Shown: positions 51,010 to 56,137, numbered from the whole stretch's first letter. The stretch is DNA of 63,409 bases, filler included, from Reticulomyxa filosa (GCA_000512085.1; 12 parts of 12 records of this genome joined end to end with filler, not necessarily neighbours in it); one strand, 5' to 3'. Numbers and translations are program-made. Notes: generated from the sequence alone by a model not told the origin.

Positions 51010-51635
51010 TTATATTCCCAAATAAATTTCCTTGAATGAACCATAGCACAAATTAACACTACAATACGATTATCATTGTTTTTGCTTTTATTTTCTTTCT
51101 ATTTTAATAGTAAAAATTTAAGACATAATATTCCGTCTTCTGTGTTTTGTCCCTTGATCAAATACAATTCTTTCTTATTTGATCGAATATCCCAAAAACG
51201 AATTGTATTATCTAATGATCCAGAACATATCACATTTGAACTATTACTAACTTCGATATTATCAACTACAAATGGTGAATACTTGAATTTGTTGACCAGA
51301 TCGAGTATCCTACAAGCAAACACTTTTATCGGCGCATCCAGATAATATCGTATTTGCACCAACACTAATTCCTAATTCATTTGGCCCATATTTTACACTA
51401 TTAATGCAGCCTTTATGTCTTTCTAATACAATCAATTGCTTAGCTGTTTCAATATCCCATATGCGAATGGTTTTATCATTTGATCCGGAACAAATGGTAT
51501 ATCCATTTCCACCAATTTCATCAATACGATTTTTGTTATTGTAATTGCTTTGCAATGATGAAAAATCAACACAACAAACAGACTATCTATGTCAATTGAA
51601 AACATGTAAGAATTTGTATGTTTTAATATCCCTTA
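51010..51635 (-). pseudogene. WD40-repeat pseudogene (same family as 28706 and 48037)
   Basis: GGNGYTICSGSNDKTIRIWD; W-to-stop in SVCL*, internal deletion and frameshift. Confidence 0.85.
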
Positions 51636-52116
51636 TTAATTTTAAGAGTTTTAAGAAGGCGCCAAAAAAAAAAATTGATAGGCTATTCATGTTGGTGTTT
51701 CGCGTTTTCAATTAGTTGTTATTTGCAATACATTTCTTCAGTCTGTAGTAAGTGACAAAGAGATCCATGACGCTTTACTCAACGTATTTTATAATAACAT
51801 ATGTTACATATTAATAATTCTTTGAAAACTTAAAATTTAAGATAATAATTTTTAAAAAAGTCAAATAAAATAACCTATTTAAAGACAGAAATTCCACCCT
51901 TTGTTACGCTAAACAAAAATTTTAATTTAACTCAAAGTTCCTCTTTTAGCGTTTCCATTGGTTGCATTCGATGATATTCTGATTCATCACGTAATATCAA
52001 ATTCCTTTCTTCAGTATCGCTTGTCATTGATTCATTTTTAAATTTTTCTTTGTCAAATATTTATTTTAATAACACAGAATATTTTATATTTTTTTATTTA
52101 TATCAGTGAAAAATAT

Positions 52117-55100
52117 TTAACTGTATTGTTGCAGTATTTGAATTCCATGAAAACGTCGTGCAACAATAGCAGCAACTATGAAACAAATATCAATAATAAG
52201 AAAAGCATAACCAAGCACATTCTTTATCAAGTAGGAGTGATTACTCAATGCACCGGAAAATGTCCAAATGAGTTGTTGCAATAAAAACGGAATAGTCAAC
52301 ACTGATATTGGGAATGCAGGAACCTCATCAGATAGTTTATAAATACTACTCTTTTCAATGAGATTTTCTTCCCGTGACGTCACGCGTTTTGTTTTTTTGT
52401 TCAACAAGTACTGGAAATTCAAGATATTGGATACAATTGTCATGGCAAACAGCGGTACAATCAACGGACAAAATAATCCTAACAAAATTACCAGCTCTAC
52501 ATTAACAAACAACCCCACAGTTTCAAAGTTTAATTTATTTGATCCAGCCAAGAATTTCAATGATTCACATTGAAATAAAAATGCACGAATGTTGGCCAAG
52601 CAAATCCATGGCAGAAATATGTTAATTGCCATCTTGGCTACCATCAAATTTCCCCATTTCTCCAGAATTTCACGAACACATGTACCTGGGAATACACATT
52701 TTATCACACAAAAAAAAAAAATGTTTTTGATCTGTCAATTATATTGTGTTATTGTTTGTGAAATATTTGAATCATAACCAAATTGAAAGCCTTGATATTG
52801 GCACAAATCACCCCAATTCAGTACTATCACATCTTCGCCTGTGCTCCATGATAACTGCAAGCTGAAATAATCCCAGTTATAACTGACAATAGCATCATTG
52901 TGATCTTTTCCAGCACAAGTCTCCCAATAATTTACCCATTGTCGACCGCAGTTGTTGTAAAAATACGATGCAAATATAAGTGGTATTATAATGCATACTA
53001 ATGTTTGTACAAATAATGCGACATAGCTGTACCATTTTTGGGCTAATTTGCGATTGGTAATACCGACAACATAAAATATAAATTCAATCGCATACATTGC
53101 AAGATTTGGTGCTATCAAAGAATTATGCAGAGATAATGCCAATGACATTATTGCTTGAATGGCATAAACTAATTTTGAAGATATGTGTAATGTGTTATTA
53201 TCTGGAAATGATTCAAATGTAAAATACAACATCACAATGGTAATAATTAAAATCCATCCCAGAAATAATAATGCCAAAATTACTCCTTTTTGCCAAGTAA
53301 ATGGATCTATTGCATCATCAAAAGTATCTTCGGTAGTACTTGTTGTAGTGAATGGAGGATTTATAATCCATTGAAGTGCATATATTAAAACAACAACATT
53401 GGATAATAAGATAACGATTATCAATAGAGTTGTATCAATCAATGACAAATCTTCAATGTATGCCAATGAAAAATGAGACAACAAATATCCTTGCTCATAA
53501 TATGTGGTATTCATTAAATAGATTATCACCAAGGAACTGATGACCACGACTGCAAACCAATTATTGAACCAGTTCAATAATACTTTCATCTGTTGGAATC
53601 CAACATGATTTGGAAGCTTTCGAATTTTGAAACATATCATCTTGCTATTACACAATCGTTTGACAATCGAGTATTTTCTTGATTTTCGTAGAGACAAAAA
53701 CAATATGGTAACCATAATAAATCCAATCAATATTATTTCAGCAAAATTACTTCCTTTTGTAATGTACAAGTTTTTTGCACTCCTTTCATCATTTGACACA
53801 TACTTTGGTAATTCCCGCTTTTTGAATACTTGATACCATTCTCTATTTTGTGAAAATCGATTGCCTAGCAAGTATAATCCATTCTCCAATTTGGTGCTGA
53901 TATTAAAAGACAACTGCAGTTCTATTTTTAATTCATTGCATGTAATGTTTTTTTATCTTTTGTAAAATAACGTGTAAGTTCATACAAAAAAAAAAAATAA
54001 ATAAATAAAAATAAACCTGAATCGAGATAGATGATTGTACTGTCGCTTAAATTTTTGACATTCGATGTTTGAATTAAATTACTTGGCATTGCACCAGACA
54101 AACGATTTTGTATTAACGTAGCAAATCCAATGCTTCCTTGAACGTCACTCCATGGCAATACTCCATCAATTGCACATTCATGTGCAAGAAACATTTTCAC
54201 ATTAGTGTTGTACAAGCTGCTTGGAAGGTGTCCTTTCAAATGTGGATTGTCATAAATGGATAATATCTTCAATGCTGGTGCTTTTCGAAATAATTCATCC
54301 AACCTTAGATTATTGTATTTAATTTGAATGTAAAGTCAAGTTATAAACAAATAAAACAGCTTTTTTTTTTTTTTTTGTTTTTGGGAAATACATATACCAA
54401 TTATGCAAATTGTGATCTGAAAATTGATTTATATGCAGTGTCAAGATTGATGTAAAATTCATTTGATTAGGTAATTTCGGTAAGTCTCCACTGAACATAT
54501 TCTTTTCCAAAGATAATATAGTCAATTCATTCCAATTATAAGAATCACCAAATGGAATAGTTCCACTGAACATATTGTTATTGAGTCCAACAACTGCTAA
54601 GAATGGAATTGTATCCAATCGCGGCAACTCACCACTTAGTCTGTTTTAACACAAAGATTTGTTTAAAAGTATAATTTTTAAAAATCAAATCAAATTGTAC
54701 TTTTTTTTTTTTTTTGGATAACTTATTGTAACCCAACATCAAATACCGCAAATCGTGCACATTTTCAATTTCTTTTGGTATTGTACCATTCAATTCATTT
54801 TGCTCCAAAATTAAAAATTCCAAGTTATGTAAATTTCCGATTTTTGATGGTATGGTCCCACTCAACTGATTTCGAGACAATTCCAATATAATCAAATTCA
54901 ATGCATTTCCAAGTTCTTCTGGTATTGTACCAGTCAATTTATTTCGATCGAGAAATAAATATATCAAATTATCTAGATTTCCAAGCTCTTTTGGTATTGT
55001 ACCAGAGAGCCTACAAACAAAAAGCAGAGCACAAGTATTCAAATTATCTAAAGAGCTTGGAAAAAGACATACCAATTTTGCTCCAAAAACAAATAGTTAA

Positions 55101-56137
55101 GTTGGGCCAAATTTTCAATTTCTGGTGGAATGGTACCATTTAATCTTTTTGTTTTGTATTTTTGTATAAAAATAAATAAGACAAATTCTTTTTAAAATAT
55201 TTATTTATGTATTTAACTCATTCTGTTCCAAATACAAAAATATTAAATTTGTCAAATTTGCAATTTCTGAAGGTATTGTGCCGGTCAAGCTAGTCAATTT
55301 CATTGCAAAAGTATATCTATTTTGTAATTTGTTTATATTGACAAAATGCAATAGATGTCAAACTCAACTTATTAACACTCAGATCGAACCCTATCAAATT
55401 CGTTAAATTTCCAAACTCTTTGGGTATGGGCCCAGATAATCTTTTTAGATTATTCAAGCAACCATTCATAATTCATTAATTTGGAAATTGTCTTTTGTGT
55501 TGTTTGCAGCATAAAACCAAACTGATTATTATAAAACGAAAAATCTACCAACTTGGTCAAATGACCAATCTCTGGAGGAATCGTACCACTTAGTCTGTAG
55601 TTCTCACAAATTGTACAAATACGTGTTTTATTTTAAAAAATAATTTCTCACTCAATCGCCAATATTTTCAAATAAAAGCAATATCATACGTGGGTATAAA
55701 TATACCATATATATATATATATATATATTCTATATATTTTTTAACTTCATTAAACGCATATACAAAAATTGTAAATTGGTCAAATTTCCAATCTCTGGTG
55801 GTATTGTACCGCTTATTCGTTTTTTTTTTTTTTTTTGAAAAAAGAAAAGAGATAATTATCGTTTACACTCTCAAGTCCAAAACACGTTTTTTTTTTTTTT
55901 TTTTTACATAACTCATTCATTTCTAAAGAAATAGATGTTAAATTGCTTAGATTTCCAATCTCCGGTGGTATTGTGCCAGTCAATTCATTTTCTTCGAGAA
56001 TTAAACATCCCAACCCAACAAGATTCCCAAGTTCTTTTGGTATTGTACCAAAGATCCTATAAACAAAAAGATAACAAAAGATTCAAACTATCCAAAGTAT
56101 TGCGAAAAAAAAAAAAAAAGCTTACTGATTATGGCCC
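52117..56137 (-). CDS. Plant-type LRR ectodomain fused to an approximately 10-11 TM membrane domain, multi-exon, 5'-truncated
   Basis: Repeated LxGTIPxEIGNLxNLxxLxLxxN; exons 56056-55913, 55817-55746, 55594-55523, 55440-55369, 55289-55218, 55144-55073, 55010-54723, 54640-54398, 54303-54017, 53921 to about 52770, and about 52686-52117; hydrophobic segments in the last two exons; no kinase. Confidence 0.88.

Follow-up and report, generated by a model that had tools for sequence, protein, structure and literature searches.

LRRC8 proteins combine cytosolic leucine-rich repeats (LRRs) with four transmembrane (TM) helices of a fold different from that of the TMEM16 superfamily, and receptor kinases couple a kinase to a single TM helix. 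TMC proteins, with 10 TM helices and no TM0, receive force from separate proteins. For OSCA1.2, 11 TM helices have been described, namely a TMEM16-like TM1-TM10 and a peripheral TM0, with a cytosolic domain made mostly of intracellular loop 2 (IL2) between TM2 and TM3 and no structured extracellular domain seen; the permeation path of OSCA and TMEM16 proteins lies within one subunit, with TM3-TM7 as its lining (PMC6235563). Two further reports describe OSCA/TMEM63 proteins as moving lipids as well as ions (PMC11534332, PMC13013810). A 2018 survey of the Anoctamin superfamily distinguishes seven families; no LRR fusion is named there, nor any taxon of the rhizarians, telonemids or dinoflagellates (PMC5868767). 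Here we analyse a gene of Reticulomyxa filosa (GCA_000512085.1), found in a window of 63,409 nucleotides, filler included, joined from 12 records of that genome, whose predicted product places extracellular LRRs ahead of a membrane domain resembling OSCA/TMEM63 in fold. R. filosa is a freshwater foraminiferan (Rhizaria), and the piece of the window analysed is one whole contig (50886-56137, 5252 bp, ~30% GC).

An earlier note, made by reading the sequence of the window, had taken 52117-53921 for an LRR sensor fused to a TMC/OSCA/TMEM16-like multipass domain, an architecture that it did not recognise as described. Our full-text searches, with their incomplete coverage of the literature, found no paper describing it either. 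Apparently, the gene belongs to an undescribed protist family, a Pfam-less branch whose domain architecture is new within a known superfamily.

The membrane domain and its fold

The gene occupies 51932..56056 on the minus strand, where we read a single open frame of 1045 amino acids (aa) from 12 exons, separated by 11 introns of 62-151 nt that are all GT-AG. Donor and acceptor sites were located by string search and the reading frame was checked by script. Sequence searches were run on single exons, and the whole TM region was represented by the stored paralog P0004 (RFI_13770) in place of the joined protein of the locus. P0004 is 76.1% identical over 553 residues to the R. filosa protein studied here, with all family-conserved residues retained. 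Hydropathy gave 10-11 hydrophobic segments in the R. filosa protein, the number that the earlier note had counted. The AlphaFold2 model of P0004, built with an alignment of 32 TM domains (A1), contains 11 TM helices and ends in a disordered tail; its 59-residue M5-M6 insertion is composed of a beta-hairpin and a pair of short helices (predicted local distance difference test, pLDDT, 80.1; predicted template modelling score, pTM, 0.82). A second model, of a Telonema subtile homolog (alignment A2), reached a pLDDT of 83.6 and a pTM of 0.84.

Searching the PDB with the P0004 model in Foldseek returned TMEM16A/F/K, nhTMEM16, afTMEM16, Ist2, TMEM63A/B/C, OSCA or TMC-2 in all of the top rows (50/50), with modest E-values of 2.6e-3 to 0.1. 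We also ran VIA-align against 48,161 representatives, and both models matched the same 13 PDB representatives at Z >= 8, all of them members of the TMEM16 superfamily (Z 10.9-29.4). For the P0004 model, the highest score was that of TMEM63A (Z 21.0, 407 residues aligned, root-mean-square deviation 5.6), followed by OSCA1.2 (Z 20.1), OSCA2.3 (Z 19.6), OSCA3.1 (Z 18.2), TMEM63B (Z 17.5), TMC-2 (Z 16.4), TMEM16F (Z 16.1), TMC-1 (Z 15.7), TMEM16K (Z 15.3) and further entries down to Ist2 (Z 10.9), the next unrelated chain reaching Z 7.4. The Telonema model matched TMEM63A at Z 29.4 (395 residues aligned, root-mean-square deviation 4.1) and OSCA1.2 at Z 24.3, the next unrelated chain being at Z 7.0. 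The best structural matches were to OSCA/TMEM63/CSC1 (Z 21-29, with 380-407 residues aligned), TMC1/TMC2 sharing the superfamily fold at Z 15.7-20.2 and TMEM16/anoctamin proteins the common 10-TM core at Z 14-20. Comparison with the ESM Atlas by shape likewise gave TM-scores of 0.59-0.60 to CSC1-like / RSN1_7TM clusters. Moreover, the OSCA/TMEM63 alignments began at model residues 7-21, with M0 included, and those to TMC/TMEM16 at residues 43-58, after M0. As M0 falls within the former and outside the latter, the arrangement fits the description of OSCA1.2 as a TMEM16-like TM1-TM10 plus TM0.

From these models, we consider it highly probable that the membrane domain has a TMEM16-superfamily fold with 11 TM helices, closest to OSCA/TMEM63. 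The fold that had been assigned by eye was thus borne out for the superfamily, the only one that the two AlphaFold2 models matched at Z >= 8, and only the emphasis shifted, as the nearest fold is OSCA/TMEM63 and not TMC. The AlphaFold-Foldseek check suggested in the earlier note brought up no 7-TM G-protein-coupled receptor fold, and the fold results led us to discard such a reading.

The sequence searches were far less telling. Pfam gave nothing significant for either TM exon, nor for the four paralogs and the 32 members of the family that were scanned, and chance matches to DUF61, Ctr, EI24 and Bac_export_2 were rejected. RSN1_7TM produced no match at E <= 10 among the window exons, the paralogs and the 32 members, and there was no PHM7_cyt match. 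With RSN1_TM, two of the 32 members gave matches short of the cut-off of 27 bits (13.6-16.9 bits, E 0.005 and 0.054), each in the same profile region (74-149) and over M1-M2, which may be a faint sequence trace in agreement with the fold result. A PDB sequence search with a single sequence found no match to the TM part; the matches of a profile search (cytochrome b at E 0.018, a designed helical protein and seipin) were spurious, and the only result of a feature search in the ESM Atlas, TMEM117 at 0.75, was rejected for its low recognition.

Helix positions in the R. filosa gene were mapped from the P0004 model, all on the minus strand. M0 (53680..53751), the extra N-terminal helix and OSCA TM0 equivalent, is predicted to join the extracellular LRR domain to the core. 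It is followed by M1 (53604-53512), M2 (53442-53362), M3 (53295-53212), M4 (53178-53065) and M5 (53052-52960), by the extracellular M5-M6 insertion (52783..52959), and by M6, which starts at 52782, spans an intron and ends at 52570. M7 (52521-52480) leads through the M7-M8 turn 'PLIVP' to M8 (52461-52399), M9 (52308-52246) and M10 (52221-52123). As in OSCA/TMEM63/CSC1, 11 TM helices including a peripheral N-terminal TM0 imply an N-out topology: with the LRR domain outside, the M1-M2, M3-M4 and M5-M6 loops would face outward and the tail would be cytosolic. The position of the Cys-rich loop, the N-x-S/T sequons (11 in the LRR part and others in the M1-M2 and M3-M4 loops) and the signal-like N-termini of full-length relatives are consistent with this topology.

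Conservation within the family lies mostly on the extracellular face: in the loops, YYxCG between M1 and M2 and SLPxDNxL between M3 and M4, and beyond them the Cys/Trp hairpin and the beginning of M6. In P0004 numbering, the invariant positions of A1 are P200, P274, C285, W293, C296, C334 and P415, and the near-invariant ones are Y95, N203, P232, R266, W289, C344, R346, K359, P367 and P419. Both the Cys/Trp loop NNCGRQWVNYWETC...C...TC and the stretch FETVGLFVNVELVILLGLFCPLIVP, to which the earlier note had drawn attention, are present and hold the most conserved residues of the family. In the numbering of the R. filosa gene model, which differs from that of P0004, C763, C774, C812 and W771 of the M5-M6 insertion and M6 start are invariant, as is P893 of the M7-M8 turn, and C822 and W767 are each found in 31/32 sequences; like these two, P897 of the turn is conserved at >=90%. 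The four Cys of the hairpin presumably make two disulfides. The 'YWETC' stretch, which had been likened to the 'CWET' motif of TMC, lies in the extracellular loop ~50 residues before M6, and its W and C are family-conserved. The likeness itself had no sequence-profile backing, and neither a Pfam TMC match nor an alignment to TMC was obtained in its support.

Several conserved polar residues lie inside the membrane, namely the M5 arginine, R346 and K359 in M6, and E396 and E405 in M7 (P0004 numbering); in the gene model, M6 carries conserved R824, K837 and P845, and M7 carries E874 and E883. The only conserved acidic positions, 394, 396 and 405 of P0004, are at the start of or within M7, none being in M6 or M8. 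The acidic residues on M7, like the 'PLIVP' turn, may correspond to motifs of OSCA, TMC or TMEM16 proteins, a resemblance that we take as a lead. Acidic residues on M7 would thus be shared with TMEM16 proteins, but the family lacks their conserved acidic cluster on M6 or M8, and since M8 has no conserved acidic residue, a TMEM16-type Ca2+ site is not present. Unlike TMEM16 proteins, it also has no Anoctamin Pfam match and no N- or C-terminal cytosolic domains.

The LRR ectodomain and its fusion to the core

The earlier note had counted at least 15 LRRs upstream of the helices, and the LRR exons indeed contain 16-17 matches to the G-x-I-P-type motif, with a total of ~19 repeats estimated from a region of ~440 aa or longer. 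The repeats are of the plant type, with the 24-residue consensus LxxLxLxxNxLSGxIP, and Pfam found LRR_1 (E 1.1e-11) and LRR_8 (E 3.5e-8), both above cut-off, in the exon at 55010-54723. Although the R. filosa copy is truncated at its 5' end, in many full-length homologs the N-terminus is a hydrophobic, signal-like segment, after which comes a cap-like motif. Pfam LRRs in this gene, together with the signal-like starts of its full-length homologs, point to an extracellular ectodomain of the plant LRR-receptor type.

On the minus strand, exons 1 to 8 lie at 56056-55913, 55811-55746, 55594-55523, 55440-55369, 55289-55218, 55144-55073, 55010-54723 and 54640-54398. Each consists of an integral number of 72-nt LRR units, except exon 2 (66 nt) and exon 8 (243 nt), and the introns bounding them are all phase-2 introns at the same repeat position (N-x|L-S-G). 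The six consecutive exons in 55073-56056 (-) each hold one or two such units, with phase-2 introns at the matching repeat position, which suggests that the LRR array grew by duplicating exon-intron units. Many introns of the LRR region carry long A or T runs. Exon 2, which follows an AAG acceptor, encodes a repeat of 22 residues instead of 24 and keeps the frame; it is the least certain splice choice of the gene model.

The last LRR exon, exon 9 (54303-54017), has its donor after 54017 and is spliced in phase 1 and in frame to exon 10 (...IIYLDS-E-LQLSFNIS...), so that the LRR and multipass parts form a single reading frame. Exon 10 (53921-52779) encodes helices M0-M5, preceded by the last LRR-like turns with the juxtamembrane segment and followed by the greater part of the Cys/Trp-rich extracellular loop, and exon 11 (52685-52122) encodes the remainder of M6 to M10. 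Their junction, QF-G-TCVREILEKWG, corresponds in form to the one annotated for paralog RFI_13770. The last intron (52121-52048, 74 nt, GT-AG) leads to exon 12 (52047-51932), which encodes a cytosolic tail of 38 aa ending in ...EYHRMQPMETLKEEL and the stop codon TGA at 51934-51932; this tail resembles the annotated tails of RFI_13770 and RFI_29885. Of the interval given in the earlier note, 53921 was correct as the first base after the AG acceptor, but the stop at 52119-52117 falls inside the last intron and the gene ends at 51932. The tail, described in that note as almost lacking, is short, a twelfth exon matching the paralog tails having to be added. There is, as the note stated, no kinase, nor is any other cytosolic domain present.

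An HMMER search with P0004 retrieved 134 cluster representatives at E <= 1e-3, among them several Reticulomyxa paralogs, sequences in the transcriptomes of Bolivina argentea and Nonionella stella, a Telonema subtile transcript and many marine metagenome contigs. A Symbiodinium sp. CCMP2592 protein (P0138, CAE7741147.1) is also a member (hhalign probability 99.5%, E 2e-22, 334 columns). Because its annotation follows the LRR part, P0138 was automatically named 'GSO1', after a plant LRR receptor kinase, though it has an OSCA-like core and no kinase. A match from Ixodes scapularis (P0096), consisting of 11 short stretches, was excluded as a likely low-complexity artefact. Pfam LRRs lie N-terminal of the core in 22/26 long members scanned. 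Transcripts of Bolivina, Nonionella and Telonema again show LRRs fused to the TM domain, and a 16.5-kb Tara Oceans scaffold (TARA_SAMEA6035044_METAG-scaffold_2155) encodes this fusion in one intron-free open reading frame (ORF) of 4419 nt (L001:3001-7419 (+), 1472 aa) with very strong LRRs (LRR_14, E 3.8e-65). The homolog survey that the earlier note had called for thus showed that the architecture of LRRs and core is conserved in Foraminifera, Telonemia and dinoflagellates. Separate genes for the LRR and TM exons, for which that note had allowed, were not found for the family, given the in-frame junction, the transcripts of other species and the single Tara ORF.

Compared with OSCA/TMEM63 proteins, which consist of RSN1_TM, PHM7_cyt and RSN1_7TM in Pfam, the family is without IL2/PHM7_cyt between TM2 and TM3, and adds a large LRR domain before TM0 and a disulfide-rich TM5-TM6 hairpin. 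With TMC1/TMC2, it shares the concept of a pore coupled to an extracellular tether, but here the ectodomain is in the same chain, the TMC alignments start after M0 and no Pfam TMC match was obtained. LRRC8/VRAC and plant LRR receptor kinases such as GSO1 similarly unite an LRR domain with a membrane signalling module, and the receptor kinases resemble the family in their LRR type and, for full-length relatives, in the signal-like start and N-terminal cap motif; in contrast to both, the family has extracellular LRRs and a TMEM16-superfamily domain as its output module.

Proposed control of the core from outside and its alternatives

We propose a model in which an outward LRR solenoid of at least 19 repeats, secreted and of the plant type, would be joined via M0 to an OSCA/TMEM63-like core of 10 helices. 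By analogy with OSCA and TMEM16 proteins, each subunit may contain a permeation path along M3-M7 for cations and/or lipid head groups, the opening of which would be governed from outside, through a ligand that binds the LRR domain or a mechanical pull that acts on it. Control from outside is favoured because IL2, the proposed tension-sensor element, is gone and because conservation is concentrated on the outer face beside the LRR domain. With some caution, we lean towards a receptor-like membrane protein whose conducting or scrambling core is controlled from outside via its LRRs; for ligand gating by the LRR domain, we can only infer it. It is possible, and we suggest it tentatively, that the family is the first TMEM16/OSCA/TMC group with a built-in extracellular receptor domain, a receptor- or tether-operated channel or scramblase in which the LRR signal might pass via M0 and the disulfide-braced loops to an M3-M6 gate.

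If this were true, reticulopodial protists could translate a contact, be it with prey, substrate or matrix, directly into an ion flux or a redistribution of lipids. Whether the bilayer or a tether gates OSCA/TMEM63 and TMC proteins is an open question, and a family that lost the cytosolic domain with the proposed tension hook and gained a covalent LRR domain provides a natural test case for outside-in gating of this fold, and the intron-free Tara Oceans ORF would be a convenient expression construct. The family constitutes a Pfam-invisible branch of the superfamily with many foraminiferan paralogs and members in Telonemia and dinoflagellates, which points to a candidate permeation system, sensory or adhesion-coupled, in cells that use reticulopodia for feeding and movement.

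Several points weigh against control from outside of a conducting or scrambling core. The family is known here from sequences and predicted models, and no profile match to RSN1_7TM, Anoctamin or TMC was significant. Sharing a fold is no proof of conduction, and the superfamily includes proteins not known to conduct, such as the tether Ist2. The near-invariant M5 arginine is replaced by Gln (Q744) in the Reticulomyxa clade. For the locus itself, no RNA sequencing run is listed, and the expression and splicing of the R. filosa copy are predicted from the genomic sequence.

Instead, membrane tension might gate the core in the manner usual for a channel or scramblase of the OSCA/TMEM63 type, with the LRR domain serving only for adhesion, localisation or matrix anchoring. 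The nearest folds are those of mechanically activated channels (PMC6235563), and the short helix after M0 (residues 45-51 of the P0004 model) could be the counterpart of the amphipathic IL1 helix, which has also been put forward as a tension sensor. However, IL2 with its membrane hook, the proposed tension sensor of OSCA1.2, is absent, the M2-M3 linker measuring only ~22 aa (P0004 model) or ~13 aa (Telonema model), and conservation is centred on the extracellular face adjoining the LRR domain. We regard this account as unlikely, although it survives better than the other alternatives.

A non-conducting receptor or adhesion protein, in which the fold is a membrane scaffold only and signalling proceeds via partners or the conserved C-terminal tail, appears more doubtful still. 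Ist2, a tether between the endoplasmic reticulum and the plasma membrane, is among the fold matches, and the tail is conserved among Reticulomyxa paralogs. Yet the M5-M8 residues R/Q744, K837, P845, E874, E883, P893 and P897 are common to foraminifera, Telonema and Symbiodinium, and this conserved pattern of charges and prolines is easier to reconcile with a working groove than with a passive anchor.

We consider it very unlikely that the R. filosa copy is an inactive or unexpressed paralog of a functional family in a duplicate-rich genome. The missing RNA run, at least five close paralogs at ~76-78% identity, the in-frame TAG of an adjoining WD40 gene and the short 22-aa repeat of exon 2 would fit it, but the ORF is intact over 12 exons with canonical splice sites and keeps all family-conserved residues. 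An artefact of the gene model, joining the LRR and multipass exons of two adjacent genes, is hardly credible, for although the deposited RFI_00664 covers part of the locus and reads through introns, and R. filosa offers no transcript evidence, the junction is in frame, phase-compatible and GT-AG, and transcripts from three other species, as well as an uninterrupted ORF, show the same fusion.

Deposited annotation, tail and flanking sequence

The public annotation of the R. filosa locus is fragmentary. Over its 380 codons, exon 10 agrees at 100% identity with RFI_00664 (P0001; 52735-54630, (-)), a deposited hypothetical protein that translates two introns (e.g. ...YMYFPKTKKKKKAVLF..., ...GLFLFIYFFFLYELTQ...) and terminates within the intron after exon 10. 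The deposited model is consequently without M6-M10, the tail and most LRRs. The 5' end of the gene is truncated by the contig edge, and a further donor-like 'ca|gtaag' is found near 56126.

The tail at 51935-52047 (-) is conserved among the Reticulomyxa paralogs and, in alignment A1, not outside the Reticulomyxa clade. It holds a Y-x-x-hydrophobic motif, YHRM, which could be an endocytic sorting signal.

Scans of the 5252-bp piece for tRNA genes and Rfam families found nothing. Downstream of the LRR-channel gene lies a fragment of a WD40-repeat gene (51099-51555 (-), Pfam WD40 E 1.6e-9). It contains an in-frame TAG at 51312-51310 in place of the expected Trp of 'LWD' (...DKSVCL*DTRSGQQ), which could mean that the fragment is a pseudogene, that the sequence is in error or that an intron was missed.

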